DNA of 64,000 nt from Azolla caroliniana (lineage: Eukaryota; Plantae; Polypodiophyta). Within the stretch, counting starts at the first letter, position 1. Every line of letters begins with the position of its first letter. The stretch is taken from positions 1,364,001 through 1,428,000 of the forward strand of contig JBHGNT010000021.1 in the NCBI GenBank assembly GCA_043228905.1, read 5' to 3'. The notes under the pieces are model-generated. The model worked only from the letters and a program-made list of their open reading frames with translations. It searched no databases and was not told the origin of the DNA. The position numbers and the translations under genes are program-made. This document shows positions 22,640 through 64,000 of this stretch, piece after piece.

Positions 22640-25600
22640 TCAGGATTGAAGAGCATAAATGAGGGATCCAGATGACCCTTCTATAAGACCTGCCACTCCA
22701 GCGGCTGCAGACTGGGCATTTGTAGGAAGAAATAGATCATGTCTTTGGTCCTTGTATGCACACCAAATCTATACAAAATAAAAGGAAGACCTCATGAGCA
22801 TTATGAGCTCACCTCGAGAATAATGAAAAAAAGAGTATTTTTGGGGGGGAATATAAATGTACATACATCCGATGAATTCAAAATAACTTGTACTCTCATC
22901 GAATGAGCACCTTCACTAGCAAAAGCATGCAAAACCTACAACAGAAAGATTAGGTTATTTACAAGACTTGTGCTAAAGCACACTGGATTATTACAAGAAA
23001 CTTTAGATGTACCCACGAATTCAACCTCATAAATTGTTGCTTATAGGTACCTTAATAAAAAGATAATATACAAACAGTGGTACCTATATCCCAAGACTTG
23101 AACCCTACAACCTTTCAGGTTGGAGATCACAAGCCTCACTATTTCTCAACGTCATCCGTGTCCACTATAAAAATTCTTCATGTTTTTAATTTGAGATCAT
23201 AAACAAATAACAATTTGCATCTAAAAACAGCTTTTTTCAAACAATTTACTTTCAACAACTCCAGGTTGAAATCAATCTTATAAGATAAAATGAAACTCAA
23301 AAAAATGTCGATATAGCTGAGATAAAAGTCATGAGAAACCAAAACCTCAATAGCTAATACTCTTCCAACAGAAGCTTCAGATTCGTTCCACTTCATCTGT
23401 GCACAAAGACCAGTAGTGCCACCTGCTCGCCAATCAAGCAGCCCTAGAAGCACCTGTACTAAACCAGCCCTGCATGCGATATGGTATACATATGAACAAA
23501 AAACGTGTACATCATATGGACTACATTTGAAAAAATCTAAAGAAGATCTTTACTTTAACCCTTGTGCTACCAGAGCGTCCCTCGCACGATTTCCTGCAAC
23601 TACCACCCTCTTCAATGTCTCTAGAGCAAGGATACTTCCACCTTGCCATCCTATGGCTTTCATCAATAGCGGCACTACCTACAGATACCAAAGAGGGGAT
23701 TTTCATTCATGACAGATAGAATTTTGAGAAATTGATGAAAAAAAGCAAATATAAAGAATAAAAATGTGTGTACATTTTAGTAAAGGAAACCTAAGATGTG
23801 AAAAACCAAAATTTTCTTTTTGTTCTACTCATCAAAAGCTTTTCATATAAATTAAATTATTTTCCTATATATTAAACTCTTTCCATCTCATTTCAGAGAA
23901 GATTGGACGGTTCTCCTTTTTGTGAAGTACTAGAATTACTCTACGATGATGAATTTATTTATGTACAGTGAAGTTCAGAGAGAGAAATAAACATGTTTCT
24001 AAATCTAGCTTCCTAAACTAGGAAAACTTTGAATATGCGTGGCCATGAGGAAGCAGTACAGATCATGATCACCAGAACTGAAGGAGAACCTTGGATAAGG
24101 AGATAAGAAAATCAAACCTGAGGAGATCCGATGCCAGTGGTGGCCATGGCTTCAGCACAAGCCGTGCTTGCAGCCAATTGATGCAGCACTCTCAAACAAC
24201 TTAATCGCACCCTTTCTTGTGAGGTTTGATTTCCCACCATCCAGCCAATAGGTTTTTCTTTTACCACATCTTCTTCCGAACTTTCTTCATCACCTCTTGT
24301 CGTCTCTACTGATGACATAGTTTCTCTCTTGCTTTCGTTTGCCATGGAACCAACAAGTTTCGGGATATAGCCTAAGTGGGCAACATGATCAGCCAATGAT
24401 GGATGCACTCTCAATAGAGATACTAGGGCTGCCGATAAGAGCAATGCCAGATCAGAGTCAATAAGCCCTCCTGCCCCTTTTAAATGGGTTGCTGCCACTG
24501 CAGAGACGTACTGGTCCAGAAGACCCTCAAGGAAACGCTTTGGATTTCGAAGAGGGAACTTTGGATCCTTGAGAAACAATCTCACATACACACCGCCAAC
24601 CTGCAAAAACCACAGTTCATTCGTTTTTCCTTTTTGAGAGGAAACAAAGATAATATTAACTGTAGCCAAATAAACAAGGTAGTTGTAGTGAACCATGGAT
24701 GAGAAATCATTGTTGGGAGGGTAATGCTATCCTCAAAGTGTGAGTGGAACCTGGAATATTTTCCATGCTACCCAATAACAGCCACTAGAAGCATCACACT
24801 GACTCATGAAAGTATGGATCGACTCATTGCCAATGATAAGACTTCACTACTATGTGAACCCTAAACACTCCATATGTTGTGTACACCAATCAAAGCCCCA
24901 CCTTAGAGTCAATGCCTATGCACCACAGCCCAAATACTTTCTTTATTATTGATACACACTAACTTGTGAAAGTATGGATCAACTCATTGTCAATGATAAG
25001 ACTTCATTTCTATGTAAACCCTAGACACTAACTCCATCTGTTGTGTACATCAATCAAAGCCTCGCCTTACAGTCAATGCCTATGCACCAAAACCCAGATA
25101 ATTTCTTCACCATTGTTTCCAACATTACGAAAGTACAACCCTTGAACATGGTTCAATATAGAGATTGTCCATACTGTAATGTTAAATTGAATCATCTTAA
25201 TGCGAATCTCATCTTTCTACATTTGTTTAGTCTTATTTCCTTAATATCTTATACAGCTATTACATTCATTATCAATGATTCATTGCCTAATCCGACATAA
25301 TTTGGAGCCTTCGGCCACACCAAACAGCAGCCAAGGAATCTACCATAGACTGGTCATCTTTGAGAATATGAGAGTATAAAGCTCTCCCCAGATACACTAT
25401 ATGACCATATGAACTGTTAAGTAATTCTGATAGTCATTCATTCCTCTCAACCATAACTGAAGATGTCTGGCATGATAAATTGAAGATTACCTGTGGTTCA
25501 TCACGCATCTCCTGTTGACCAGATGTCTGGTCAGGAGAGTCCCATTCACCTATGCTTCCTTTCACTTGTTCCTGAAAAAGATCAGATGCCATTGTAGATA

Positions 25601-28600
25601 TCTGAGCACTAAGGTTCCATGCCATTGCCGGACTCCAGACAAGCTCTGGTGTTTCAGTTGTTTGTTCAAGGGCTGCAACAACAGTTTCCCCTGGGCCATC
25701 ACGGATAGCCGAGACAAGGCCATCTGGGAGGTATTTTGCAAGAGTTATTGCCACTCGGGGTCCGTGCATTGGCTGACCAACAAGCTTTCCCAAAAGGGAT
25801 GCTGCAGCTGCTCTTTGCTGAGGCGGTATTTCCTCTACAACACACAAAGCAAGAGGTTAGCATACTTGAGAAAGTTGCATAATCATGGAATCTATCACTG
25901 ACAGAATCATACCCTGCATAGGAAGCATAAGCTGAAGTATGTAAACAAATCCTCCATGTTTTGCCGTAACCCAAGTTAACTCTGAAGTACTTGCCAATGC
26001 AGACAAAACTCGTAAAGCCCCTGGTCTGCAGGCAGGTGTGCTATGAAGAAGCTTAAGCACAAGCATTAGACTGGAACGATCAGCCACCATGGCTTCAACA
26101 CTAGGAGCATGAGTTGTTAGGATAGAGAAAATATTCAGACATAATTGTGGCACCTCCCCACATGAATTTTTCGAGTCCACAAGGCTTTCAAAAAATGGTA
26201 CTAATTGCTCTTTAGAGCTGAATATTGAAGCAAGGTTTGGAATAGCTATGAGGAGGTTCTGTAAGATTAACAAATAAATCACATGTCTGTCAGTGAAACC
26301 AAGAAGCACTTACCTGAAACTAAATCAAGAACTTGGTCTTTCCACACACCTGAAGTGCTGTAAGCCCAGTTGTAAGGTCCTTTACAAGAATATCTTGAGG
26401 TGACATATCCTCATGAGTCTGAACAAGAGAATTTTCAATTGATTGTTTAGTATCCGTTTGCGATTCACATTCTTGTGATAGTTCAGAACTAGCCTCTTGT
26501 ACATTTGGTTTATCCATTTCAGCTGAGTTTTTCATCATATTCAGTTTTTTCCTCTCCTCTACTAGCTTGCAGATGAATTTCAGAAGAGAGTGACAAAAGA
26601 AATCAGCCTGACCAAGTTCATAATCAGGCTGTTCATTATAAACTCTTAGGTAAACTTCACCCACATGGAGCTCTTTGGAAAGAGATTTATATTCAAATAT
26701 CTGAGCTTCTTTCATTTCATATGAACCATCCGGACACTGCGATGCTCGTTGCTTATCCACAAACTTCAAGAGCTCACCCCGTGTGGATGAATTCCAAATT
26801 ATCTACAAAAAAACAATTATTTACAACACTTTAAATAAGCAATGCTTGAATTTTTTCAGCACCTTGATGAATCATAAATATAACCTCTGGTGTTTCCAAA
26901 TTAGAATTGATGTTGTGAAGAAGCTCCTTCAATGATCCGGAGCTAAGCATGGCTGCTAGCTTTGGGGTTAACAAGGCTTTTAAAGAGTTAGATGCAGTAT
27001 TATTGATTGGTGATGAGGATTCTTCTGTTTGAGAGCCCTGTAATCGGCTAAGAGCCTGTGCTGCAAGATATGCATGCATATTTTTACCAATCTGAACTCG
27101 GCTGCCAACACCATGAGGTTCGCTTGCACTACTTTCTTCTGCTGTTGAATCATATTGCAAAAGAAGAGGGAGAAGATACCTGTATCACAAATAAAGAGAG
27201 AATTCAGAAGAAATTTTGCAAAGAATCACATCAAAAAATTCGAAATAATGGGATTTACCATATAACCCCAGCCTTTAACATGCGATCTTGCAAGTCTTGT
27301 GATAGAGCCAAGTTACTAATAGTCTGAAGTGCAGAGTCAACAGCAACAGGAGCATGCTCAAGTTCGGAGCAATGGACAATGTCTTCAACAAATCCAGGAC
27401 ATCGTAGCATTTCTCTCCAAGCACTTCTAAATTTGCTCAAACAAGCAAATGTGCATACAACATTTGTCACAATCATTGCAGCTGGGTCCGTTCCAGGAGT
27501 GTTAATTTGTACTACATACATGCATCTTGAGAGTAGTGTGGCTAGTAAAGTTATTCCACCATCTCGTACCAATTCCTCACCATTGAGGGAAGAAGATGCA
27601 CACCTGTTGCACATATGAAGAAGCAAATATATGGCAAAGCATGCTAAAACAAGACAATAATCGGATATAAGACTGTATGATTTTTCTTACGTTAACCATA
27701 CAAGCTCTGAAGCTGCAATAAGGAGTGGCACTCTATCTGGAGACAGAAAGTTACTATCATCTGTATTAACTGTTGTGAAGCAGCTGAATAACATTGAGTA
27801 CCCTGCATACTTAAATGGCTCGAGAACACTTCCATAACGTCTATAGAGGATGCATTGGCCTTTTAATAAGAGTAACAACCTCCAGGACTGAGGCCCTTGA
27901 AGACCATGCAAGGTAGCCTAAACATGGAAGTAGTGAGTATTTAAGTTGTCAATCCATCCATGAAAATATGGGCATGTTTCAAGTTATCATATTTTAAAAT
28001 ATCACGAGTATACTTGAGAATTATCAGGTACCTGACTTGAACTTAGAAAATGCCCACTATAGGAAATTCTCAGAATATTCATAATATATACAAATATTTT
28101 ATGCCCCAAATATGAAATTTGTATCGAATTAAAGACAAGTAGGAAGTTCTCCAACCTGCAAGCATTCATAAGCTTTCTGAACAGCCACAAACTTCTCTCT
28201 TCCCTCTGGATTCTTATCTGGATGGAACTTCATTGCAAGCTTCCGATATTGCCTCTTCAGCATTTCCTCATCAACACGGCCAGCCAATGGCTCAGTACAT
28301 TTCCCATCATCTTCAGAAGGATTACAATAATTACCACTCATATCCTCTTCAAATGGTATCTCTAAGATTTTACAAGCTTCCTCCTCAGAAAGGTCCATTG
28401 GCCGTCTTGTCAGTTCTTCACGCCACATTGTAAGCAAGGATTGAAGGAACTCAATATGCTCTACAATGGGCCAATTAGGAAACCTTAGCTCATCACATAA
28501 ATTCCTCAGATAATAACGATGGCACCACATTTCATCCTTAAGTTCTGGGTAAGTAACCGGAGGCATAGGTGCATATTCATATAAAGAATGACAATGTTGA

Positions 28601-31600
28601 GATAGTTTCTGAGTAAAATCTCCAAGATGTTTAAGAACCTATCAAAACAAATATCAAGATATACTAAGCCAAATCCAGTCCTAATCCATATTTGTTAGGT
28701 CTCATTGGGCATTATGCTCTTTTGGAGAACTTAATTATATATTGTTTTCATTCTTTACACCGCATGAAAAACAGAAATAATACCTGATCAATTAGCCTCT
28801 CAGCTCTCATCTTGTGTGTCCATATGATTTCTGGAGTATCCGAGTCAGCAACCATGGCCGCAGCAAAGGCTGCTGGGCCACTCCTTTCCAATACATAAAG
28901 AAGGGACTCTGGCAAAAGACCACCAAGAATGCTACGTTTTGCCAAAGGAAGAGATGAGGACAAGGCTGCTTCTGCTCCTCCATGAAAGGCTTGAAGGGTA
29001 TGTGTAGCCGCAAAAAGGTTAGCAACAGAATTCAGGTTTGATCCAGCATAAGCAAGTAGAAAGTAGAAAGCGCCTGTATTATAAAGCCGGACCATAGCCT
29101 TAGGGTTTCTTGTTACTACAGCCTTCAAAAGTGATGCTGCCCCATCCACAATTGCTGGTTCTCCTGCTAAAATTGACTGCATGCCACATTGCGAATTATT
29201 AATTTTCAAACTTCAAGAAAATACTTTCCAGTTTATACCAAACATTAATCTACTCCACTTCTCTAGAAATACAAACTTACAGGGGAAAAGATGGTCCTAA
29301 TAAAAATTCAATGCATAAGCAAATGGATTCAGTTGCCAAAACTAAAATAGCCATTATCAATGGTCCAAAAGTGCATCTATCTGGCAATTTGAGGATAGAA
29401 ACTTTCCAAGCATATGGTCAGCTAGACAGAAAAGGATAAAAATTAATTTAAAAACCAATATAGAACTACCTAGTATTTATAGATACACGTTGCAACCTTT
29501 CATTAAGAAGATGAACAAGCTTATATACCGTCTAGTAGTTAAACATAACAACCGTCAATATATATGGTGTTATCTAAAACTTATCAATAATGGGAACCAT
29601 CAAAGTGTCATTAAAAGGCATGGTCAGGATGACGCAAGGATGATGAGATTTATACAGTAGAATATATATGCGACAATTGAATCAAAGGATAACACAAGAA
29701 ATATGTCTTAACAAGTAATGTAGTTCGTGTCAGCTTTTGTGATGAGCCAGAAATGAGTTGGATAACGAAAGAAAAATCACCTGTGCAATATGTGGAAGAC
29801 AACGAGAGCTGGACAAAATGCGCTTAACTCGGGGGGTAGGAGTTACAAGTTCACCAGCATCATCTAAATCTGAATGAACATTCACCATACTGTGCAAGAT
29901 AGATAATGCCACTTCTCCAACCTGACAGACAAAGCACAAATCCCTTTTTGTAACACATAACAAATTCACATAATCAACAGTTAATATATTATAAATCAAT
30001 CTGTAGGAAAATAGAAAAAACAGGAAGGAAATGAAACACACACATAATATCATGAAAGAAAAATCTACATTAAAACAACAAAAACATCAGACAAGCAGCG
30101 TGGATTTTCCTGTAAACCATACGCTGGGGGCTCAACTCCGATCCCCATCTTAGGTGTCATTTCACCTCATTAAGAAATAATAATAATAACAAACACTCAA
30201 ACATACAAATGATCTCATAAATGTTGTCACTACAGCACTTTTTCCTCTTTCCAGGGTTGACCAGGAGCATATGGGGAAATAATGAAACTTTAGGGGTATT
30301 TGGGAAATGAAGAAGAACTTAAGAATATTTCTAAGTTTTTTCTGAAAAAAGAGTGGATGAGCAACATGCCTGTGCAGATGTCAGCACTGGAACACGAGAA
30401 GCTAATGCCCAGCGTAATTCACGAATATCACTTAGTTTTTTCCACTCAGTCATGCTGGAAGCCCAGCACTTTGTGTTCCAATCAATTTCTTTCTTTGACC
30501 ATTGCCTTCTAATACCATCTTTTTCCATGGGACCAACCTGTGCACCATCCTTGTTCATATAATGCCATTCTTTTTGTGGTTCCACAAATGCAGTAGATGC
30601 TATAAGATTTGACTGCAGTGGAATTGAAGTTCGTTCAGCAGCCTCGTGCGCTGTTGTCAAAAAGTCAACAGCTAGTACGCAACCTCCTACACACACACAA
30701 GCCTCTGCATTTGAAGATACTTTCATGAGCACCTGTCTCAGAAAAGGTAAAGTTAAGCAAAATAGGATATTGTTGTATACCATAAATGGTCGTTCACCAG
30801 AAATCAAGCTATGGCTACGCAGTTGTTTTATGTAAAACTATAAACACATAGAAAATTTTGAAAGCTTATTTTTCATACACGTGAGATACTCATACTATAA
30901 ACAACAACGCACATACGACATCATTTATTCATAGAAACAACAACTTTTCAACAGAGAGTGTTCACAATTAATATTCATGATACTATTTCTTTCTTGTTTC
31001 CAGGAAGCACAATCCCACATAGTTTGTTTTTATTGTTAATAACCTGCATTACAATCTCATTTAGTGAAAGCCTCAAGCCAACAAGTGTTTCAGCAGATAG
31101 CCCCTATAGTTTTACATTTATTATGTTCTAGTGTTCTTTCTCCTCCTGCTTTATTCCAGTCTTTAAAAAAGCAAACTAAGAAAGATGGTCACCTTCAAGA
31201 GCAACAAAAGTCTATGTCGAAGAGCTCTGTCACTTGTACGATCCAAAAGAACAGTGATATGGGCAGTTCCATCAAAAGGACCAATTGCCAGGTAATGTTG
31301 TTCACAAACAATAGCCATTGCCCTGGCACACAATTCCCTTACAGATGATCCACCTCCACCCCCAAAGCCATCAAGCTTACCGACATCACACCACTGTTCT
31401 GATGTATCCATTTCATCCCAAGTTGCTCCTTCAACAACTAAACCCATGTCCGCATCACATAAAAAGCGATGGTACAATGCCCTGAAAAATGTGGGGGGGT
31501 CTCTAAGAGGGAAGTCCTGAGCCTCACCACCCATTCCACTACCATCTAGGAGAAGCCTGAGATAATACTGACCAACACAGACTTCTTTTGAAAGGCTTGG

Positions 31601-34600
31601 ATACCTGACCCTATACTCCAAGTAATTCCAAGAAAGCTGACTAGAAATTCGTTCTCCATGTTTATCATCAGTTCCATAACTGATGACATTGACATCTTCA
31701 GTGCGTTCCTTCTCCACATTTAGATGGTGAACTTCAGATTTCAATGCTTCTTTTAATTCTTGCCGAGTTCTTTCATTCCAGATTAGATCTGCGCGACTAT
31801 GATCTAGTCCAAATGCCCACCAAAACTGAGGCCAATTACAAAGTAACCGACCAGATCCAACAGAAGTACTTTCCGTCACAACTTGAGCAGGAGCAGGAAC
31901 ATTTAGATAGTTAGAGATGTCATTGTTTGATCCATTTGTGATACCATTGACATTGTTTTGGTTAGATAATGAGGTGGCTGATGATGAAGTATCATGGTCC
32001 AATGGAGCTACCACATCAGCTGTGGGATGGTATTCTAATAAAGTTACAGCTGAGTCCTTATTTAGTGTTTGTGAATTTGATGATACTACATTCTCATGTA
32101 TTACATCTGGAGAAGAGTTTCCCTCTTTTGCATGCACTTGTTTACCACCATTTTTCGTCCGAAACAATTTACCTCTTCTATATTGAAGTATACGTTGTTG
32201 CCTCCGTTTTGCAGAGAATCTTAACTCAGATTCATCCTCTAAGCAATCATCTTCACCGTCTTTCGGGAGTGTATGAAGGTATGCCACTAGACCAGGAGGG
32301 ATTATACGTGAGAGTAGCTCAAGTGCTGGTTTATATGAGTCTGCCCAAAGAGCTACTAGTTGTCTGCTGACCTCACGACGTTCTCCAGATGAGAGGAAAC
32401 AAGCATTTTCTAAATGTCTCAAAAGAGCTCCATCTCGTAAAGCAGCATCTCTCATTGATTCTGCGGCAATTGCATCCTCCTCTGCAATAGTTCGCATAAT
32501 CACTGCAACAGTTTCCCTTACACTTTCTGCAGTATGTCCAAACAGGGAAAATAAGCGCCTCCTTAAACCTGCTACCTGCCTTAAAGTTTCCACAAACGTA
32601 GAATGATCTGTATTCTCACTTTGTGGTTCACAAAGCATTGCCTCCAATACTTCCACCACCGCCATTGACAATAAAGGTGATACAGACACTGATTTCAGCC
32701 GATTCACCAGGATAGTTATATAGGATTGCTGATTGAAAAGGACAGACTTTGCATGCATCAAAGTTGCATGCCTCTCTCCTTTTGAGTTGAGCAGATAAGC
32801 ACTCTCACCAGGTCCACCTCCGATAAGCACAGCAATGAGACTAGCAGCTTCAGTGGCAACACCTTCAGACCCACTTCGTAGCAAGCCCAATACTCGCTGC
32901 ACAGCAGTAGGATTTGAAATAACAACAGAAAATGCAGATGTGGAGGTAAGTAGCCGTCTCAGGCAAGAAGCAAGACCTATTATTGTTGCAGATGCTTTGG
33001 GTGATGGAGGTGGAGGAGGAGGAGCCTCTGGAGGCAAATTTGGTGGAGCAGGAAGCAATGATAGCAATGCCATCAGTGCAACCTCTGGTACTTCAGTGTT
33101 GGATTGTACCCCACTATATGGAACACATGCATTGAATTCCTTGATTCTTCTCCAGAATTTTGCCTTTGATCCATGAATGGAGCCGCCTTCAGCTACCACA
33201 TCCTTGGCAGCTATGACAAGATGTTTTAAATGAAGAGCCTCGCCATCGAGGTCTGCAAATAAGCGGAGAGTAGAAGAATTTGTAGATTGAGATAGTGGTG
33301 GAACTTTGCCACATGGAGGATCAATATAATGACCAGGAAGAGTTAATCTTGGTAAAACAGGTATAGGACGCTGGCCCTGAACATGAGAATTAATATTACA
33401 CATAAATGTTTACTTTCTGTGTAGTATTTCTAGAATTTATCGCTTACCTCCAGTTGTACAACATCCTTTACAGCAGCCAATAAACTGTCACGAGATGTAC
33501 TTGAATATACCTAAAAAAATGTTACCCTCCAGTTATATATCACATACACATGACAGGTCAAGGACATCTAGCTGTTCAGGAGCAATATAAATTAAGCATC
33601 ATGCTAAGATCTGTTAGCTGTTCAGGCACAATGTAAATTAAGCATCATTCTAAAAACAGGATTTTTCATCTGATGAAATTTTTCCTGGCAAAAGGCTCTA
33701 AGAACTCACATGAATCAGACAACCATCGTTGTATTCTATTGCAAACAATTGGGGCTCCTCAACAAATCGAACAAGAGCAGCTACTGAAGATAATGGCCGA
33801 ACACTCACAGCCTGCATCAGCACAAAATCTATAGAAATTGTAATAGGAATGCTTCTGATGTCTCTCTATATCTTTCAAGGACGGAAATATATCCGTCCAT
33901 TGATCTAGCTAGCCCTCTATCTTCAAGATTTATACAATGCTATGACCTTACCTCATAGTTATCTGTTCTGCGTTCTACAATGGATGACTTTGTCAAGATA
34001 AGTTGCCTGTGTACAGAATCACCATGCTCATCTAATCCAGATTTTTCACCATGGAAGAAATGTGTACTGAAGTTGTTAGCAGTGCCACGCCCAGCAGAAC
34101 GAAACCTAATCACAGACCACTCACCATACCGCGTCTCCTCTGCACCCACTGCTACCATAGCTGTTCCATTTCAGAAAAAGTAAATGTAAAACATATCACC
34201 ATTATATAAGGAGAAACACAATTACTCAAAACAAATTGGAGATAAGAACCATGACATATCATGCCTCTTTGCTTCAAGAATTCAATTGGCCCAATTTTTT
34301 GTGACCTATCAATCAATAGCGTCAACCCCAAATGTGTCTTCGCAACATCTGCCTGTCAAATTCCATGAAATTGTCATTAGCACTTTTGAATAAGAATGTA
34401 AGAAGCCATTTATTCAAAGGTCAAATTAATTACCCACAAATCCAACAACAATGATGATGCATCAACCAACAATAAAAAACAGAAGTATTCATATGAACCA
34501 GATCCTAGTTTGAGCCATTTACCCTTTATTTTTATTGACTTACGATTTTTGAGAGGATGGTTGAATTGGACACCCCAAAATCTGGTAAAAATGCTTTACG

Positions 34601-37600
34601 CTTCCTGCCATACATGGGACATAAAACAAATCCGCCTCCTTCAGCACTGTTTCTGCCATAAGCATCCGCAAGAAGTATTATACTGGGAGAATCCATATCC
34701 CGAAAATCTAAACACCATCGCAGATCCCCCGTCTTTTGTTTTCTAACTTCTACTCCAACAACTGTTACCCATAGAGTCTGCACCAGTGATTAGAAATGTT
34801 TATTAATCACATTGTATGCATTAAGCCTAAAGTTAATAACCAGAACAGAGTTCACAAAATAAATGGCTCCTATTTGAGACTAATATTTTGTCATTACATT
34901 TCATAACAGCATTTACTCAAATATAAATATAAAATATGTCTGCAACCACACCATAATGTGTATATAGACCCTTTGCTACAATCGTTTATACAGGTCCTGA
35001 TCACAAACATTCCAAATCCACAAAACCTGCCACTCACTCCAAAGTGTCTCCAGTAATTTGATTTCAACAAGGGACAGCATCAAATTTCTGTACTTCCGAC
35101 CTCTAAATCCCAGGAGGTGGGGAGTCATTGGGAGACCAAATCATATGCAAAGGTGAAAGTTAGAGACCATCATTGGATTGCTATACATCATTGCAAGTAA
35201 TGTTCCTATTGCCACACTCATTTTCATCTCCAAGACCTTTTCTGTTGTTTGTTTGCAGACATCTCTAGGTCCTAAAGTAGTTTACATTTGCAGCTTCCAT
35301 GAGTTGTGCCTCCCAGAGACTCTGGTCATAATTCCTACTATGTTTTTTGAACTCTTATCAATTTCTCCCCCTTTTTTAACGCACCCCATCGCAAACCCCC
35401 TTCTCCAATGCACCTTATCTCCCAGAGACTCTGGTCATAATTCCTACTATGTTTCTTGAACTCTATCAATTTCTCCCCCTTCTCCAACACCCCATCGCAA
35501 ACCCCCCTCTCTCTTTACTGGCTTTCTCAAAGACGAGACAACACTTAAGATGTAATCTCTCGTTTGTTCTTATAGGCCATTTTGGCCTCTTAAAAGAAGT
35601 TAATATATCTTTCTTTCTTCATCGTGCTTGCTTATCCTTTCATTCTCTATCTAATGCTCCCCATGATATTTCTCCATCCTTCCCCCTCTCCGCTTTCTTA
35701 CCCCCATATTCTCTATCTCATGCTTTTCCCACTTTGTTATTTTGCTTTCTTAGTAGTGTTCTTCATCTCATGTGCATGATTGTGCTTTCTGCTCTATTTC
35801 CCTATGTTACTTTTGCACATTTGTCTCAGCTCCATGTCACTATCCCAGAGCCCAGCCACCCAATTTCTGTGCTCTCTTCTACATCTGTCTCTTTTGTCAT
35901 TTCCCCCCTTGCAACTGATGTAACTTTGCATGAAACCATTACCTTATTTGATTTGAAGAAAAATATATATTTCTTACCATGTTCCTCAATGAGTACCAAC
36001 ATACAATATAGGTTTACAACACAGAACTATGCATCTGATTAAAGGGAAATAACATCTGGAAATTTTGGACAGAAACCATTCTAAAAAAAACAAAAAATAC
36101 ATATGCACACATTGCCGCATGAAAACAATTGAGTTTGATAAGCTTTCTATTTGAATCCCTTCTCAAAATGTGCAAGATCATCATCTTTATATACCATTTG
36201 AATAAAAACCCATTACATCTTTACAATTAGCATCGCATGAGACATGTATAGTATTCACATCGTTCATGCTCAGAGGTATGTATGAGTTCATAAAGAGAAC
36301 ACACGATTTTGTACCTCCTATTACAGCAGCATTCATTAAACTTACAAATCACTACATATGAAATTACATAGCATGAGAGAATGAAAATATTTACCAATGG
36401 AGAGTTGGAAGTTTTGCGCCTTATTTGGACAACCTTGAACTCGGCAACAGGGGATGAGGAAATTGATCGACCTGGTGTCTTGCTCCATTTTAGCCTATTA
36501 AGTTCTGTCAAAATTGCCACACGATACCTAGCAGAAACAAATTATGCATCAGAAAAAGTGGTAAGATTTTTAACATCACATTTAAAAACATTTTCCAAAG
36601 AAGTCTGGCTTACACAGTACTCAGAATTTTTATTTTTTAATTTCAACGACATCAAGAACACAAAAAACGGTGTGTCTAGTTTGACTTACAGAATATTCAT
36701 GACACTTACCTAAATTACAATGAAACCAAAGAACAAAGAAGAATTGCATTTTCTAGTATTTGTGAATGCCATGTTTCCTTCCAAAATTATTTGCATGGTA
36801 TCAGAGACAATGCAAATTCAAAAAGATGTTGAATCTCGATTGATGATATCAACACCACTCAGATCAACTCAAGGATGAACCCTGACTCTCAAAACATACA
36901 AATGAAAACCACAGTAGAACATTGGTTGTCACATATAATAAGTTGACAAATGGTTGGCAGCAAGACATAAATCAGAACCCCAAGTAAAATTGATAACAAG
37001 GTAAAATGGAGAGAGCCATTGTTGGTATACTAAAATAAAAGAACACACTACCTCCATGTTTATATTTACATTCCAACCATTCCAGTCGCATGTTGTAAGT
37101 ATAAACACAACCCCCATTCCAATATAGCTTGGATTTTCCACACTTAAACATAACTTAAGTGGAAAAGAATTGAATAATCCAAGCTGATATTATTAAATTG
37201 GATAAGGAAAGGATATGGATCAGCCCCACAACATCTCTTGGTGGGAAGATGGGCCATTTCAAGGCACTCTTTTTACACGTGTCACAGGATGGATTTAATA
37301 TCAGACCTTATATGGATATTCATCTATCTTATGTGTCCCATATGGTGATAAGACAGCTCAAAACCTATTTAGAAATTGAGATAGACAGATGCATGCAAAA
37401 CTCTGGAGCAATGGATCTGCCAATTGTATCATCAGGGGGTGAATCGGAAGAGCACTATGCCTACCGTTGCCTCTTCAAACAAGGGTTTGGCTTGTACTCA
37501 AGGACATGGAATATGAAGACCAATGGTGTTTCGAGTTCTTCTTGATAGAACTCAAGAGACATAGAAAGAAGTTATTCAAGAACAATCAACCATAACCACA

Positions 37601-56385: not shown

Positions 56386-59306
56386 AAGGAACTTGATTTA
56401 TTGTGCAGTTAGGATCGTGGCAGTTTATGTCAAGTACAACACCAAATAGCTTTAATAGCAGAAGAAACTCTCCAATACCTAGAATTGTCTATAAAGCTGT
56501 TTGAAGCACTAGATTTCAACTTCTTGAAGGAAATCTCTCTATCTTAAAATTTTGTGGATTATGGGAATAAGTTTGAGCATTTGTGTACTCACCTTATGCT
56601 ATGTATTAGCAAAAACACGGTATGGGAACTCTCATCTTATATACTTGTATCAGTAAAAGAACATTGGATGTGGAAACTTTACAAAATGAGTAAAAAAGAG
56701 TTGATCTTTTTCCACTTTTTTGATGGATGTATGATATTTAGTTTAATTAAACATTGCATATTATTTCTTGTGTTTTTTATAACTGATGGTACATACAACA
56801 CCTCACCTGATTTTTGTATGTTAATTAGTCAATCCCATCCTTTCATGATAGATATATCTATATATATTTCTCTTTTGATGAATAAGCACGCATGCATTGC
56901 GTTTTTGTTGTCCCATTTGTTGATCGGACACCATTAATTTCTGTCTTATTGTTGGATCGTCTATTGCAAGGGCCGGTCATCTACTGGAAAGACTAGTGAT
57001 GTCTCTTGCATCAGTTTTATGCTGCATTCCTTTTTAGGCTTGATAAGGCATTTGCATATCCCAATGCATTATAGATGTGGGTGTAAGAGGTGTGGGCTTA
57101 GTGTATTTGACTTGGAGAAGTTCTACGAGGTTGATACATAATAATGAGAAGCATTATTGAATGGTTGTAAATACTTATCATATTGTGAGAACGCTCCTCA
57201 TCCTCAATCTTGTGATTAAGGTAGATTATACCAGGTATGCTGCTCTCTTTAGAAAAATCGTCAACAATGGGAAGTGAACATTGAATGGTGTTGCCAAATT
57301 ATCTATGCATAGAGAAGTAACATTGCCATATACTGCTTGATTTATTTTTCTAGCATGATAACATCTTGAAAGTGGTGACCAGGACCAAGAATGATTGTAT
57401 TATAATCCTTGGAATTCAAATATCAATGGGAGCAAAGAAAGAGAGACAAAGCATATGAAAAAGAAATTTCAAACACTCAATACTCTTTTCATGATCAAAG
57501 AATTGTAAATGTATTTAGGTATTTTTTCTCGTTCTATTGGGCAATACTTACAAAAGAGCCAATCATGTATACCATGCAGCGGTGTTACTATGATACCCTT
57601 GGTGTTACTATGATACCCTTCCAACTGGTCCAAAATTGATGAAAAACCTTGGTTGTAAAAAAAGATTTTCGTTGCATTCTTAGAAATGGTTTCTTTATGT
57701 GATTTGACTTAATCCACAAAAACTGTAAAGAAAAAACTTATTTAATTGTGTTTTTGCAACACCCGCTAAACTAAGACAAGATCAAACTCTTGGCTGCAAA
57801 TATTGTTTTGACAGCCTGATCAAGGGATGGAAGACGTAATATAATGCAAAATTTGGGCACAGATCATACTTCCATTAGATGGACCTACTGTTGGATGTAT
57901 TTCCATTGCTTGGATGCAGATCCATCTGACAATGGAAGAAATCATATGAATTTAGATGGGTGACCCATTTGGAAGTGGACAAAGTGCGAGTTAACTTGCA
58001 TGATGATCAATATTATGTATCACTCCATCAATTATAGAGTGTAGGAGATCATTTTGCTGATTATGAGCAAATTTTATAACTAGAAGAAAACTAGAAGAAA
58101 AAGAGAATGCTGGAAAAGTGTAGGAGATCATTTTGCTGATTATGAGCAAATTTAATAACTGTCTAGAGGAAGTTGGGCTTACCCCTTTCCAAAAAGAAAA
58201 CAATGTTTAGGGTAGACGAAACATGGACATTTGGCATGTGGACCATTTGGGTGAAAAGCCAATGTTGATTAAGGTAAAGAAAGCATCCAATAGATGATGC
58301 TTGAATATGCATTGTCATTTCTCGGGACCAATGTCTTCACCAAATCTAGATCCCACATTTCTCCTATACAACTGAGTTGATGCACCAATTTATGTAGTGA
58401 GATCAAAAGTTGCAGTGCAATGTAAGTCAATTAGACAAACGAGAAATTGAAAAGACACTAGAACTCACACTAGGCAAACCATCCAACATGATAAAGAAAA
58501 CAAGAATCGGTATGCTTTGCACACAGGCAAACAATCAGCCTATTTGGGATGGAGCCAAAGTCTTGCACCCATGTCATGAAATTATCCAGTAAAGATACAG
58601 TTTTGCAGGAATGTTATCATCCTAAAGACTACCATCAAGTATTTAAATAGAATGATGGCGATAAAGACATTGTTTACATGTATAGGGGATGATTAGCACT
58701 TGCTCTGACTTTGAACTTACCTATGTATGCTTCAGTAGGTTTTATGTGTATTATGTTCTTGAATCACAAAATCAACAATAAACGAAGTATAGTTTTTACC
58801 AGGAGTGGGTGTGGAAAACAACTGGTCATTGTGGATTTCCCCAACATTCCAGAAAGCGTGTATGGATTCTTCTTCCACATGCAACTCATCCGCTTTTGGT
58901 ATAACCACAAATCGGTGGCGATTTCAAGGAAAAAAAGATTGTGCTTGCTCAGGGAGGACTCAACCAACCAAGTGGGGAAGATCATTGTGAATGCAATATG
59001 CACTTTCCTATTCAATGAGATTTACCTATCAAAAAGGAAAATGTATTGAGCATGACGTAGTGAATCACAAGGAGTGAAGGAAGAACTCTTCTCCTGACTA
59101 TGAAATTATAATCTGGAAGCCAATAAACAGAGGAAAGAAACAATCATTTGCCTAATATTGTTCTGTTTAAAAAAACATTATCATCGTTTCCATGTGTGAT
59201 ATTACAAGAATGAATTCATGTATTAGTCTGTACATCCAATTGTATCTGACGAGTTACAGATATATTTTTCTGCAGATTATCCTGCTTTCAAATTATTTTT
59301 TTGATG

Positions 59307-61549
59307 TTATGAGTTACGATCTATACTGGTTTGCAACCTCAAGAACTTCATGATGGTTTCATCATTCTGCAATATCTGTCACATCAATCAGTGTAACATG
59401 AAATTGAGTTAGTCAGGGACAGAAAAATTGATGCCAAATGATAGATCATAAACAAAAATGAGTGTCGTTTGAAAAACAAGAATAAATCAATGAAAATATC
59501 ACACCTACTGTGGAGTACTAGGGTTGGATATGTTGCAAAAAAGTTAAAGTAAATAACAAAGAAAGAGCACAGGGAAGTTTTGTTGGGCCCTATACATTTA
59601 GAATGTTGGGCCCAAGATACTAACTTTGCTTCAAGATGGATGCAAAAAATAATGAGAAATGAGAACTCATCATCAAAGACTTGCAAAATATTACAGTCAG
59701 TTTGGCTTTCAAAGTTAGCACTGGTCTACAAGAACAAATTTCTTCAGAATGTTGGAAAACAACCATCTAATGGCTATTAAAGGATCTCATTGGAAGGAAC
59801 CCAGTTTAACCTAGAGTACAAGATAGAGAACAACAAAAAGATGACTCAAAGTCAGTTTAGCTTTCAAAGTTAGCACTGGTCTACAAGAACAAATTTCTTC
59901 ATAAATGTTGGAAAACAACCATCTAATGGTTATCAAAGGATCTCATTTGAAGGAACCCAGTTTAACCTAGAGTACAACATAGAGAACAACAAAAAGATGA
60001 CGCAAAATCAGTTTGGCTTTCAAAGTTAGCACTGGTCCAGAAGCTCAAATTTCTTCATAAATGTTGGAAAGCAACCATCTAATGGCCTACCAAAGGATCT
60101 CATTTGAAGGAACCCACTTTAACCTAGAGTACAAGATAGAGAACAAACAAAAAGGTGGCTTAATGGTAAGGATGAGCAAAGCAACATCTCAACAGTCATA
60201 TGTGTGGAATTTTTCTTTTGAAAATATTTTTTGAGTGTTCATGAGAAATATATACAAAAATATACAACCCTTTTGAATTATGACATGTGCCGAGGTAACT
60301 GGGAGAATAAAAAACAAGGTAAAAAAGAAGCAAAAATGGTTTGGTTTTGATCATATGTAATATAATAGAACAAAATGCTAAAAAACTCAAACACATGCTT
60401 TTGGTTGTTTACTCCCTCTCATAAATGAATTATAACACCAATCCATTTTGTTTACTTTTAACATACAATCTTCTCTAAATGGAAAAAGAAGAAGACAGCA
60501 TTACCTCTCTTTTTAATGAAGAAATTCGACGTCGTTGATACTCAATTTCTTCTTCGAGCTCAGTTCGTTGCCCAACTTCATCTTCTAGCATTTCCTTTGT
60601 AATTCTGTGTAAACAAGAAAATTTGCACACCCAAATTGAATCTAAATTCTTTTTTCAGTTAAAATTCTAAAACTTCTTAAAGACTAGATGATGATTGGAA
60701 TAATATAATACTTCTTCACAAGTTTGGCGTTTTTTTAAAGCCAATGGTAATCAAAATGATAACCTTCTCTCTTCTGCTAATTGTTCATAATGAGACTCTT
60801 GATCTTTAATCCAGAATTCTTGCTCTTTAACCATAGTTTCAATGTCCTCCTAATTGCCAACAAATGATTTTTTTTTTTTTCCAACTTTTCAAATCAATAA
60901 AATATCCATACTTAAGAATACAACTTTAAAATTTCCCGGGAAGAATACATACTGGCATTATAAAAAATTTATATGCTAGAATACTTTATTGTGGAAATTA
61001 TGGATGAATGAATACACATGTTTTTCATTTTTCTCAATATAATTTTTAGAATATGAAAAATACCAACCTTTAAGAAATCTATTGTTTTTCCGAGTGGATT
61101 AGCGGTGTGGCACAGAGATTGTACAATGTCTTTCAATGCCTTTACATTGAAAAAAATAAATTGATTTAAAAAGACTTTACTGAATGTCTATCATATAGAG
61201 TTACACTTAGAAATATATACGTGTGGAAATATATTAAGTAGTTTCAGATTCTATTTAAGATATATGAAATTGAGGCATAACAATCCTATATATGTATCCA
61301 CTTAACGCCAATGAAACACAAGTGAAGTATTAACTATAAGAAATATAACCCAATTAAGAAATGAGTTGCAGACAAGCATCTGGATAAATGTATATAGGCA
61401 CATAAAGAAGATTTAAGAATAGATTGAAGTATAACAATCTGATATAACCAATTAGGAAATGAAAACCGAAACAAATGAGGAAGAAAGAAAGACAAAGAAA
61501 AAGGAATAAAAAAAACCTCTGCTTCATTGTCGAGATTATTATCGCCCAT
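59307..61549 (-). CDS. IFT54: Short IFT54/TRAF3IP1 (MIP-T3) C-terminal coiled-coil protein, 5 exons, ~119 aa
   Basis: Exons 61517-61549, 61068-61139, 60764-60849, 60505-60604, 59307-59375 are all GT-AG and phase-consistent. Protein: MGDNNLDNEAEALKDIVQSLCHTANPLGKTIDFLKEDIETMVKEQEFWIKDQESHYEQLAEERRITKEMLEDEVGQRTELEEEIEYQRRRISSLKREILQNDETIMKFLRLQTSIDRNS*. The motifs QxLCxxANPLGK..D..ED...M..E...W and IL.NDETI match the MIP-T3 C-terminus. Confidence 0.85.
59695..60153. repeat. ~155-bp tandem repeat x3 in the last intron of the IFT54-like gene
   Basis: Units begin at ~59696, 59851 and 60007 (tcagttt.gctttcaaagttagcactggtc...cctagagtacaa.atagagaacaa). Confidence 0.95.
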
Positions 61550-61991
61550 CTCCACCAGTTTCCAATCCCGGTCTTCTCAAAGAGCTAAAAATGCAAGTTC
61601 ACATTTTACTTTAAACGGGTGTCCTTCACAAATAATCTCATTTCATCCTTCATTTCTATGTATTCAAATAATATAACATAAATATTCATAACTCATTTGG
61701 TACAGAGGTTAGAAAACGAAATGAAAAACGAAATGTGAAACAAATGCAAATTTTTTAAAGAACGCTTGTTTTTCTTTTTCTAGAAACAAATTTTGACATC
61801 ATTAATTCTCAAATCAATGTTTCTTTTCCATAATAAAAACCTAAAAAAAAAGCTGTTTTTGTTAAACTTCCATAGTTAGAATGAGAAGAGACAGAGAGAA
61901 AAGAATGCAATGACATTACAAATGTTGAAGAAGATGTGCAAACAGAAACTGTTGAAAAGAACATGAGAAACAACTGAAATGAAAAGGGGAA

Positions 61992-61994
<3 letters not shown>

Positions 61995-62022
<28 letters not shown>
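61995..62022. repeat. (GA)n microsatellite in the probable 5'UTR of the IFT54-like gene
   Basis: Read directly from the sequence. Confidence 0.9.
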
Positions 62023-62191
62023 TGCCTTTGTTTAAGAGACTAGACTGTGATCATCGCTAAATAACAGAACAGGGCGGGGCAGAAGAGAACAGAGCAGATC
62101 AAAGTAAGAAAGAAGGAAGGAAAAGGGTATTTAGGGGATTTGACAAAACGAGCCACTTTTATTTATTGCCTATACGACCCTATAATTTCTT

Positions 62192-62506
62192 GGGAAAAGT
62201 ACCAGGATACCCCCCCTGGAAGTTCGTCTATTTACCAGAATGCCCCTGGAAGTTCCAAATTTACCAAACTACCCCTATGTCCAAAAAATAGACTTTATAA
62301 AGTAATTATACACTCAAATCTACAAGCCCTATTTACCAAAGATGGAAGAAATGGACCCGAACTAACCCTATTTACCAAAGATTTGAGTGTATAATTACTT
62401 TATAAAGTCTAATTTTTTGGACATAGGGGTAGTTTGGTAAATTTGGAGCTTCCAGGGGCATTCTGGTAAATAGACAAACTTCCAGGGGTATCCTGGTACT
62501 TTTCCC
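62192..62506. mobile_element. Mutator-like MITE (long TIRs, 9-bp TSD)
   Basis: TIRs 62192-62321 and 62379-62506 (GGGAAAAGTACCAGGATACCCC...) are near-perfect. TSD TAATTTCTT at 62183-62191 and 62507-62515. Confidence 0.93.
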
Positions 62507-64000
62507 TAATTTCTTTACTTCTTGTAAAATGCTCCTCCACACCCTCCTCGACAGGAGAGTTCATTCCACTCTGAATGCGCATGTTCTTGTTCCGATTGTT
62601 TGTCCTAATTTTCCTTGCGTATTCATTAGACAGGAATTTATTCGTGACTAGTTAGTCAATTGTAATGCCCTACCCTATTTTCTGCAATTGTGTGATGAGT
62701 TTCTTCCTTATATTGGGGTTCGACTATGGACATTCGAGGGGAATAAAGAAAAATGTCAGAAGGGAGTTTTAGTGCAAACTTTTTTCCCTTTCAAGATTGT
62801 TCTGTGATAGAACAAAGGAACTTAAGGGCATTCACGAAAATAAAGGTAAATGATGAACAAGGGTTTAACTATGCCCTGTCTCTTCCTTTTCTTTAGCTTC
62901 AATTATGGGCATGTGGGAAACAATAGAAACTTAGGGGCATTCAAGGAAATAAAGAAAAATAAGAGAGGGGCATTCAAAAACGTTTCCATTTGTATACCAT
63001 GACATATTTGCAATTTCTCAAAACTTGTGAAAAGACAAAGTTTTTGTTGCCAATAAGGCACTCAATTATGCAAAGTTGAGAACAAATAAAATGTCGAGAA
63101 TTGTCCTTGCACATGTGAGCCTACAAATGCTCTATTATAGACGGCCAACTATAGACATCAGACAAGTGTCACATATCTTCATTACTTCAATGGGGCTAAT
63201 TGAGACAAAACATCAGAATGAGCAAACTCCAACTACATTCGCAATGTGCATTAAATTAATCAAATATATCCTCTTGCATTTTGGAACCATGATTAAAGTA
63301 CTTGTTAATGCAAATCCAAAAAATGGCAAAGCATTATTTTTCAACTAGTTGGACATAATGCCAAGGTGGTACGACATTACTAGTTATTGCATATTATGGA
63401 AAAGTAGGGTTTAGTGGACATAGATAAAGGTTTTATTATCATCTTCAAAGGTCAAATATAACCAATGAAACCAACATATAATGTTTTCACGTAAATATAA
63501 TGTGAATGTGAGTAGTGACCGTACATGTTCAAGAATGTTACGAGTTAATGTCACAATTAAGAGTACACGTTGTGAGTGTGAGAGAAATTAGTGCAAGGAT
63601 TGGATTGGGTCAAAGATGTGTGAAAAGCATAATCAAGTACGATCAAAGGTAGAGCACTATATCAATGTGTAACTACTAACATGCAAAATCCCGAACTTGT
63701 TTAAGGCAAAAATGTGCATAGTCGACTAATCCCGTCACATATGCCAAAGGTCATGTCTCACATTGACACAAGTATGGAATAACTTTTTTGGAAGCAATGG
63801 TTTGGATGGTTGATAATGTGATGGGCTCTAACACGTATCGATGCATGTGATCTGTCATACAATGAAGAATATGGTTTTGTACTTTGATGCAACATATATG
63901 GGATAGTGTATGAAGCAAGAACCTCCACATTTTCCCCATGTCTTGATACATTGGTGATATGTAGACTTCCGAACTTGTGTGCCCCAACATCTTGTGTACA

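Follow-up and report, generated by a model that had tools for sequence, protein, structure and literature searches.

A transcribed and selected IFT54-family gene of the fern Azolla caroliniana that may encode only the C-terminal coiled coil

Can a plant that builds cilia on its sperm make do with the tail of IFT54? This protein is an essential IFT-B2 subunit, and what is known of the separate jobs of its head (tubulin and WDR60), its linker (motors) and its coil (IFT20 and IFT57/38) comes mostly from engineered deletions in Chlamydomonas and in human cells. The question is raised by a locus of the fern Azolla caroliniana (GCA_043228905.1, contig JBHGNT010000021.1, positions 1,364,001-1,428,000), a stretch of 64,000 nucleotides (nt) that is referred to here as the window and in whose coordinates all positions are given. 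A first-pass annotation of the window had proposed that five small exons splice into an intact open reading frame of 119 residues, equivalent to the C-terminal coiled coil of IFT54 and lacking the calponin-homology (CH) head. We find that an IFT54-family gene is indeed present here, under selection and transcribed, and that the transcripts seen can encode only a 119-residue C-terminal helix, from which the CH head, the disordered linker and the first third of the MIP-T3_C coil are all missing. The reading we favour, that of a separately transcribed, head-less short IFT54, we hold with about even confidence.

The exons were placed on the minus strand from the flanking splice motifs, and their phases were then checked. 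Five coding exons run from an ATG at 61549 to a TAA at 59307, with AG at every acceptor and GT at every donor. Their coding parts (33+72+86+100+69 nt) add up to 360 nt, i.e., 119 codons and a stop, with zero stops in the exon-wise translations; borders, phases and translations are thus in agreement with the five-exon model proposed before. Two sets of sequences from outside the window contribute to the features listed below: contigs of X1, the one public run that contains part of the stretch (recorded as 'RNA?'; 29 megabases of contigs), and L001-L004, four low-coverage related-fern contigs from ENA assemblies, obtained through a metagenome contig scan and one word search.

61517-61584, minus strand: exon 1 (e1), with a 35-nt leader that contains an in-frame TGA, the ATG at 61549-61547 and 11 codons (MGDNNLDNEAE); X1 contigs cover 61516-61586.
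61068-61139, minus strand: exon 2 (e2), 24 codons with the most conserved IFT54 motif (LCHTANPLGK); matches to Pfam and to Chlamydomonas IFT54.
60764-60849, minus strand: exon 3 (e3), 86 nt, required for the frame; matches to Pfam and to Chlamydomonas IFT54; conserved in L004.
60505-60604, minus strand: exon 4 (e4), 100 nt, a charged helical segment; X1 joints 59375/60505 and 60604/61068; conserved in L002, L003 and L004.
59307-59375, minus strand: coding part of exon 5 (e5), 22 codons and the TAA; conserved in L004 including the TAA.
59149-59306, minus strand: 3' untranslated region, at least 158 nt; X1 contig 1 is ungapped over 59375-59149, and the end of the contig may not be the end of the RNA.

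The introns of the coding region span 159-1129 nt. As the first-pass annotation had noted, a TGA lies in frame within exon 1, 30 nt 5' of the ATG (61579-61577); the leader reads CT CTT TGA GAA GAC ... GAG ATG. The exon 1 frame is open right after this TGA, which is directly followed by two AGs. The ATG is in a context with G at -3 and +4, and the N-terminus of the predicted short protein starts MGDNNLDNEAEALK. Among the three nearby acceptors, TAG/C at 61584 is probably the strongest, the GAG and AAG that come after it, and at which the frame would stay open, being weaker by general splice-site preference. Intron 4 contains a 156-base-pair unit repeated 2.9 times at 93% identity (59695-60154); L003 and L004 align with fewer units, so that the copy number differs between taxa.

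Homology searches were run exon by exon and not on the joined 119-residue protein. Exon 2 alone matches the Pfam family MIP-T3_C (PF17749) at positions 55-76 of 154 (E 9.6e-5, 22.9 bits) and exon 3 alone matches it at positions 78-105 of 154 (E 0.018, 15.5 bits). Each of these scores is below the whole-protein cut-off of 25.8 bits; the two matches are adjacent and in order, and sum to ~38 bits. In a search of solved structures, the same two exons were aligned with Chlamydomonas IFT54 (8bd7_X, 510 residues), exon 2 with residues 408-429 (E 0.009) and exon 3 with residues 431-460 (E 0.04). Exons 1 and 4 had no IFT54 match in this structure search; exons 1, 4 and 5 are too short or compositionally plain to score. 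Nor was IFT54 matched in Pfam or the PDB when exon 1 was extended as far as the TGA (EDRDWKLVEMGDNNLDNEAE). Because adjacent exons match adjacent parts of one family, which is not a chance pattern, the assignment of the locus to the IFT54 family is safe as judged by sequence homology, and the MIP-T3_C membership expected by the first-pass annotation is borne out for exons 2 and 3 in exon-wise searches. The 119-codon frame covers approximately positions 44-154 of the MIP-T3_C profile, of which about the first third is absent. Extrapolated in order from exon 2 (residue 408), its Met would correspond to about residue 396 of the Chlamydomonas protein. Three other searches added little: a HMMER library search with a 30-residue piece around exon 2, a query too short to inform on relatives, had an unrelated repeat protein (P0001) as its sole hit; word searches using the stop-free stretches of exons 1 and 2 came back blank, under a length window that shut out proteins of more than 126-140 residues; and a protein atlas search with exon 3 gave chance-level rows only.

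Evidence for selection was provided by the related ferns. Because introns as well as exons of L001-L004 align to the window, at 91-93% identity, these contigs represent the locus itself in related taxa. Of its exons, L001 has e2, L004 has e3, e4 and e5 together with the 3' flank, L002 has e4 and part of e3, and L003 has e4; coverage is therefore of e2-e5, with none of the contigs extending to e1 or to the upstream exon e0 that is described below. Splice sites and the TAA are all kept in the exons so covered. Over 107 codons compared between the window and L001 plus L004, we counted 9 synonymous and 7 non-synonymous changes (Nei-Gojobori sites, exon by exon), which correspond to a synonymous divergence (dS) of 0.16, a non-synonymous divergence (dN) of 0.028 and a dN/dS of 0.17; under neutrality, a count of non-synonymous changes this low has a binomial probability of 0.0012. 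All 24 residues of exon 2 are identical in L001, with 3 synonymous changes, and exon 5 is the least constrained (0 synonymous, 3 non-synonymous). Given this ratio, well below 1 in the comparison with other ferns that the first-pass annotation had proposed, and its P value, purifying selection acts on the coding part, which makes a fragment that died long ago unlikely. In L001 (189-2010), the resemblance to the window is lost 60 nt into intron 2, and no exon 3 or 4 was found in the remaining 1.8 kilobases (kb); an insertion, a rearrangement of the copy or chimeric assembly of this low-coverage contig could explain the break.

The X1 contigs lie on exons, not on introns, and are joined at GT-AG borders, so that this run behaves as complementary DNA; its spliced contigs are 99-100% identical to the window. 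Contig 1 (418 nt, 4 differences) consists of 59149-59375, 60505-60604 and 61068-61141, followed by 17 loose letters that equal the end of e1. It supports the junctions e4-e5 and e1-e2, and joins e2 straight to e4. At 61104 an X1 contig has ACA versus ACC in the window (Thr, synonymous); L001 has the X1 base, which may be a shared polymorphism. Contigs 2 and 3 (94 nt each) cover 61516-61586, one of them equal to the window and the other with 5 differences in 71 nt. The differing variant represents a second allele or a duplicated copy, and both variants have the e0 junction in common: each carries 13 loose letters beyond 61586, the reverse complement of which, GTCTCTTAAACAA, is found a single time in the window (minus strand, 62028-62040), compared to 0.01 occurrences expected by chance. 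Two features follow from this placement.

62026-62040, minus strand: e0, the 3' end of an upstream non-coding exon, from the loose letters of X1; at its 5' limit it would be a first exon from ~62141 or a 31-nt internal exon from 62056.
61585-62025, minus strand: intron 0, 441 nt, with GC-AG borders and (CT)14 at its 5' end; the junction is put at the sole near-canonical placement, AAG/GC...TTTAG/C.

Each of the three frames is interrupted by a stop within the final 31 nt of e0, and both X1 contig variants use the acceptor at 61584, with the result that the TGA is retained in the RNA. With stops in three frames of e0 and the TGA in e1, no upstream frame therefore fuses to the IFT54 frame in the X1 RNAs. 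The TTTAG acceptor predicted by the first-pass annotation (exon start 61584) is thus the one used in two RNA-like contigs. Among the observations that the same annotation had named as speaking against its proposal were transcripts in which an acceptor 3' of the TGA is joined to CH-domain exons, and a lack of expression combined with neutral dN/dS and a full-length IFT54 elsewhere. In X1 the opposite of the former was seen, the TTTAG acceptor with a non-coding e0, and spliced contigs exist. The 5' end of intron 0 is occupied by an (AG)14 / (CT)14 microsatellite (61995-62022), within a pyrimidine-rich region of ~180 nt around e0.

The DNA further upstream was scanned on the minus strand over 61585-64000, with stop-free pieces of at least 20 residues compared to Pfam at E values up to 10. 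Of 44 such pieces 42 were scanned, the remaining two sitting in an inverted-repeat element. Up to position 64000, where the window ends, none of the scanned pieces matched MIP-T3 (PF10243, the CH head) or MIP-T3_C in this piecewise scan, which finds just two of the five known exons and so has limited sensitivity for upstream ones. Within that sensitivity, the statement that no CH-domain exon is recognisable up to 64000 holds for the 42 pieces. No X1 depth is found on 62034-64000 except for a diverged copy of the inverted-repeat element. An 82-residue piece (63754-63999) had a weak match to Ndc80_HEC, which has a CH-type fold (E 0.058); it has no PDB or MIP-T3 match and no RNA cover, and was taken as chance. 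Looking up the window's open reading frame 63754-63990 and the exon 3 frame of L004 in public assemblies yielded nothing new. The inverted-repeat element itself lies directly upstream of e0 (62190-62510), and its arms, 62213-62289 and 62412-62488, are 97% complementary. It also has inner arms (62283-62321 and 62379-62417), is hairpin-like and resembles a miniature transposon; diverged copies are present in contigs of run X1 and of a further run, X2, one of them at a depth of 179. At 62167-62160, a AATAAATA motif with pyrimidine-rich sequence behind it resembles a plant core promoter; it was noticed post hoc and is given little weight.

What could a protein of this kind do? Compared to IFT54 as it is known elsewhere (TRAF3IP1 or MIP-T3; DYF-11, elipsa and, in Chlamydomonas, FAP116), the fern frame has the IFT20-pairing C-terminal coil of this IFT-B2 subunit, with exons 2-3 in order. 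It is without the CH head, the linker and about the first 44 positions of MIP-T3_C, and has 119 residues in contrast to 510 in Chlamydomonas and 625 in man. Binding of IFT54 to IFT20 is through the coil and not the CH domain (PMC4818760), and the two proteins are mutually dependent for stability (PMC9674899). Residues 533-625 of human IFT54 are sufficient for IFT20 binding, and WDR60 binding requires the CH domain (PMC10110421). This human fragment is the same region as exons 2-5, and the coil region is also needed for the DYNC2H1-DYNC2LI1 interaction (PMC10110421); the fragment was engineered and tested in cultured cells, whereas its fern counterpart would be a natural gene product, with binding predicted by analogy. 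Because exons 2-5 correspond to the IFT20-binding fragment, pairing of the fern protein with IFT20 is plausible on this analogy. IFT20, the predicted partner, is a similar-sized IFT-B2 subunit made up of essentially one coiled-coil helix (PMC4818760, PMC10191852), but it belongs to a separate family and packs on IFT57/38 with a hairpin at its N-terminus (bioRxiv 10.1101/2022.08.20.504624).

It is the other end of the coil that the fern frame would lack. By the mapping extrapolated above, the N-terminal end of the coil (the equivalent of Chlamydomonas 342-395), which in published models belongs to the four-helix bundle with IFT57/38, is absent from it. In Chlamydomonas IFT54, residues 342-356 are at the IFT57/38/54/20 interface and their deletion abolishes kinesin-2 binding (bioRxiv 10.1101/2022.08.20.504624). 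Because the equivalent of residues ~340-395 is absent, the IFT57/38 contact and the proposed kinesin-2 platform would be lost, and it is doubtful that the short protein serves as a normal IFT-B2 subunit. The earlier suggestion of a CH-less IFT54 acting as an IFT20-stabilising module therefore fares differently in its two parts: the retained region is that of the IFT20-binding human fragment 533-625, in favour of the module, and the cut falls inside the coil, so that the standing of this module as a normal IFT-B2 subunit is doubtful. Among land plants with swimming sperm, embryophytes are without RABL2, nearly all transition-zone proteins and some IFT subunits (PMC4736243), and the only kinesin-2 of Marsilea is an atypical one (PMC4947347); a shortened IFT54 would be in line with such reduction. 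In the literature searched, a naturally head-less IFT54 is not reported for any plant, and no paper mentions IFT54 and Physcomitrella together.

If the locus is a separately transcribed gene for a short IFT54, the non-coding e0 would be spliced through the GC-AG intron to the TTTAG acceptor, leaving the TGA before a well-placed ATG. Translation from this ATG, with exon 3 included, would give a small coiled-coil protein that corresponds to approximately residues 396-510 of Chlamydomonas IFT54 and, by the same kind of mapping, to 524-625 of the human protein. This protein would pair in parallel with IFT20 and thereby stabilise it, by analogy with human 533-625. It could supply neither the head that binds tubulin and WDR60, nor the motor sites of the linker, nor the coil end that packs on IFT57/38. 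It may act beside a full-length IFT54 from another locus or take the place of one. We favour the short gene because the acceptor at 61584 closes the frame in both contig variants, its TAG is the strongest of those at hand, e0 is non-coding and the ATG is in good context, and because the gene's other introns do not exceed 1129 nt, yet nothing coding is seen in the 2.4 kb upstream. The further proposition that the 119-residue protein is the fern's only IFT54, and that the cilia of its multiflagellate sperm are built with the IFT20-pairing helix alone, strikes us as rather unlikely.

Several observations weigh against a short gene. Its frame would begin at about position 44 of 154 of MIP-T3_C, inside what in trains is one continuous coil of IFT54/20 along IFT80 (PMC10191852), and the protein would be without the IFT57/38 contact, as the equivalent of residues 342-356 is absent (bioRxiv 10.1101/2022.08.20.504624). 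The sole contig across e2-e4 skips exon 3, for which the depth in X1 is nil; this skip shifts the frame, so that a stop is reached at 60580-60578, with 73 nt still to go to the last junction, and among the X1 contigs there is no RNA with the intact 119-codon frame. The transcript evidence comes from a single RNA-like run, of no known tissue and with a depth of ~5. Finally, e0 follows a long pyrimidine tract and a TTTAG, so that it could be internal, with further exons past 64000. The stretch 62034-62141 is free of X1 contigs, as would be expected of a 31-nt internal exon and just as much of thin 5' coverage.

Much of this is also what would be expected of the last five coding exons of a full-length IFT54 gene, with head and linker exons beyond the end of the window and with the X1 RNAs as unproductive or alternative-promoter forms, a possibility that we take seriously while considering it on the doubtful side. 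On such an account e0 would be a poison or cryptic first exon beside the inverted-repeat element, present in X1 RNA from outside the sperm-forming cells, and in spermatids an upstream exon would be joined at the AG at 61577-61576 or at 61574-61573, from where the frame is open through EDRDWKLVEMGD. The frame opens just past the TGA, with the two AGs at once after it, and the domain is severed mid-coil, at about position 44-55 of 154, the absent part being the IFT57/38 contact (bioRxiv 10.1101/2022.08.20.504624). The X1 RNA is aberrant in one respect already, the skipping of exon 3; the acceptor upstream of e0 is a textbook one, with no X1 depth on 62034-62141; and the inverted repeat at 62213-62488, just upstream, could supply a cryptic promoter. 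Spermatogenesis in Marsilea is controlled post-transcriptionally from stored RNA (PMC4947347), and a dN/dS of 0.17 fits a full-length gene equally well. The cost of this account lies at the same junction: the TAG acceptor at 61584, used in both X1 variants, closes the IFT54 frame whatever is upstream, so that a weaker GAG or AAG 9-12 nt behind this strong TAG would have to be used. An intron of more than 1.9 kb would be needed, compared to 159-1129 nt for the gene's other introns, and the 2.4 kb upstream show no trace of the earlier part of MIP-T3_C or of a CH domain.

A decaying copy, be it a duplicate truncated at its 5' end or a gene that the TGA has recently disrupted, mis-spliced at a low level while a full-length IFT54 is active elsewhere, is distinctly improbable. 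It would account for the exon 3 skip that takes the sole spanning contig out of frame, for the low depth, for a last exon with non-synonymous changes only, for the break of L001 in intron 2 without an exon 3 in the next 1.8 kb, and for the fact that a variant of exon 1, differing at 5 of 71 nt, is expressed as well. Against it, frame and splice sites are kept in all five exons of the window and in e3-e5 of L004, the changes in exon 2 are synonymous only, with 24 of 24 residues identical, and the dN/dS of 0.17 (P 0.0012), over a neutral divergence of ~8%, argues against long-standing neutrality. The three readings leave a small share of the probability unassigned.

If the short gene is the right reading, and only the last 119 residues are expressed, the locus would show which of the jobs of IFT54 the assembling sperm cilium can forgo, and would add to the simplified cilia of embryophytes. 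Were the 119-residue protein the sole IFT54, with the head, the kinesin-2 and dynein-2 sites of the linker and the IFT57/38 contact all lacking, nature would have supplied a deletion series for a subunit that is essential to algae and animals. Should the exons prove to be the tail of a normal gene, they would still define, with exact exon borders, a fern IFT54 locus that is unannotated, and would illustrate how a sperm gene can be spliced unproductively, with a stop-bearing upstream exon, a stop-retaining acceptor and exon skipping.

Elsewhere in the window, the minus strand of 24000-36000 carries a large gene of the RME-8 / DNAJC13 (GRV2-like) family, in which a 746-residue frame (31166-33403) matches RME-8_N (E 1e-62) and a GYF_2 domain lies at 30334-30807.

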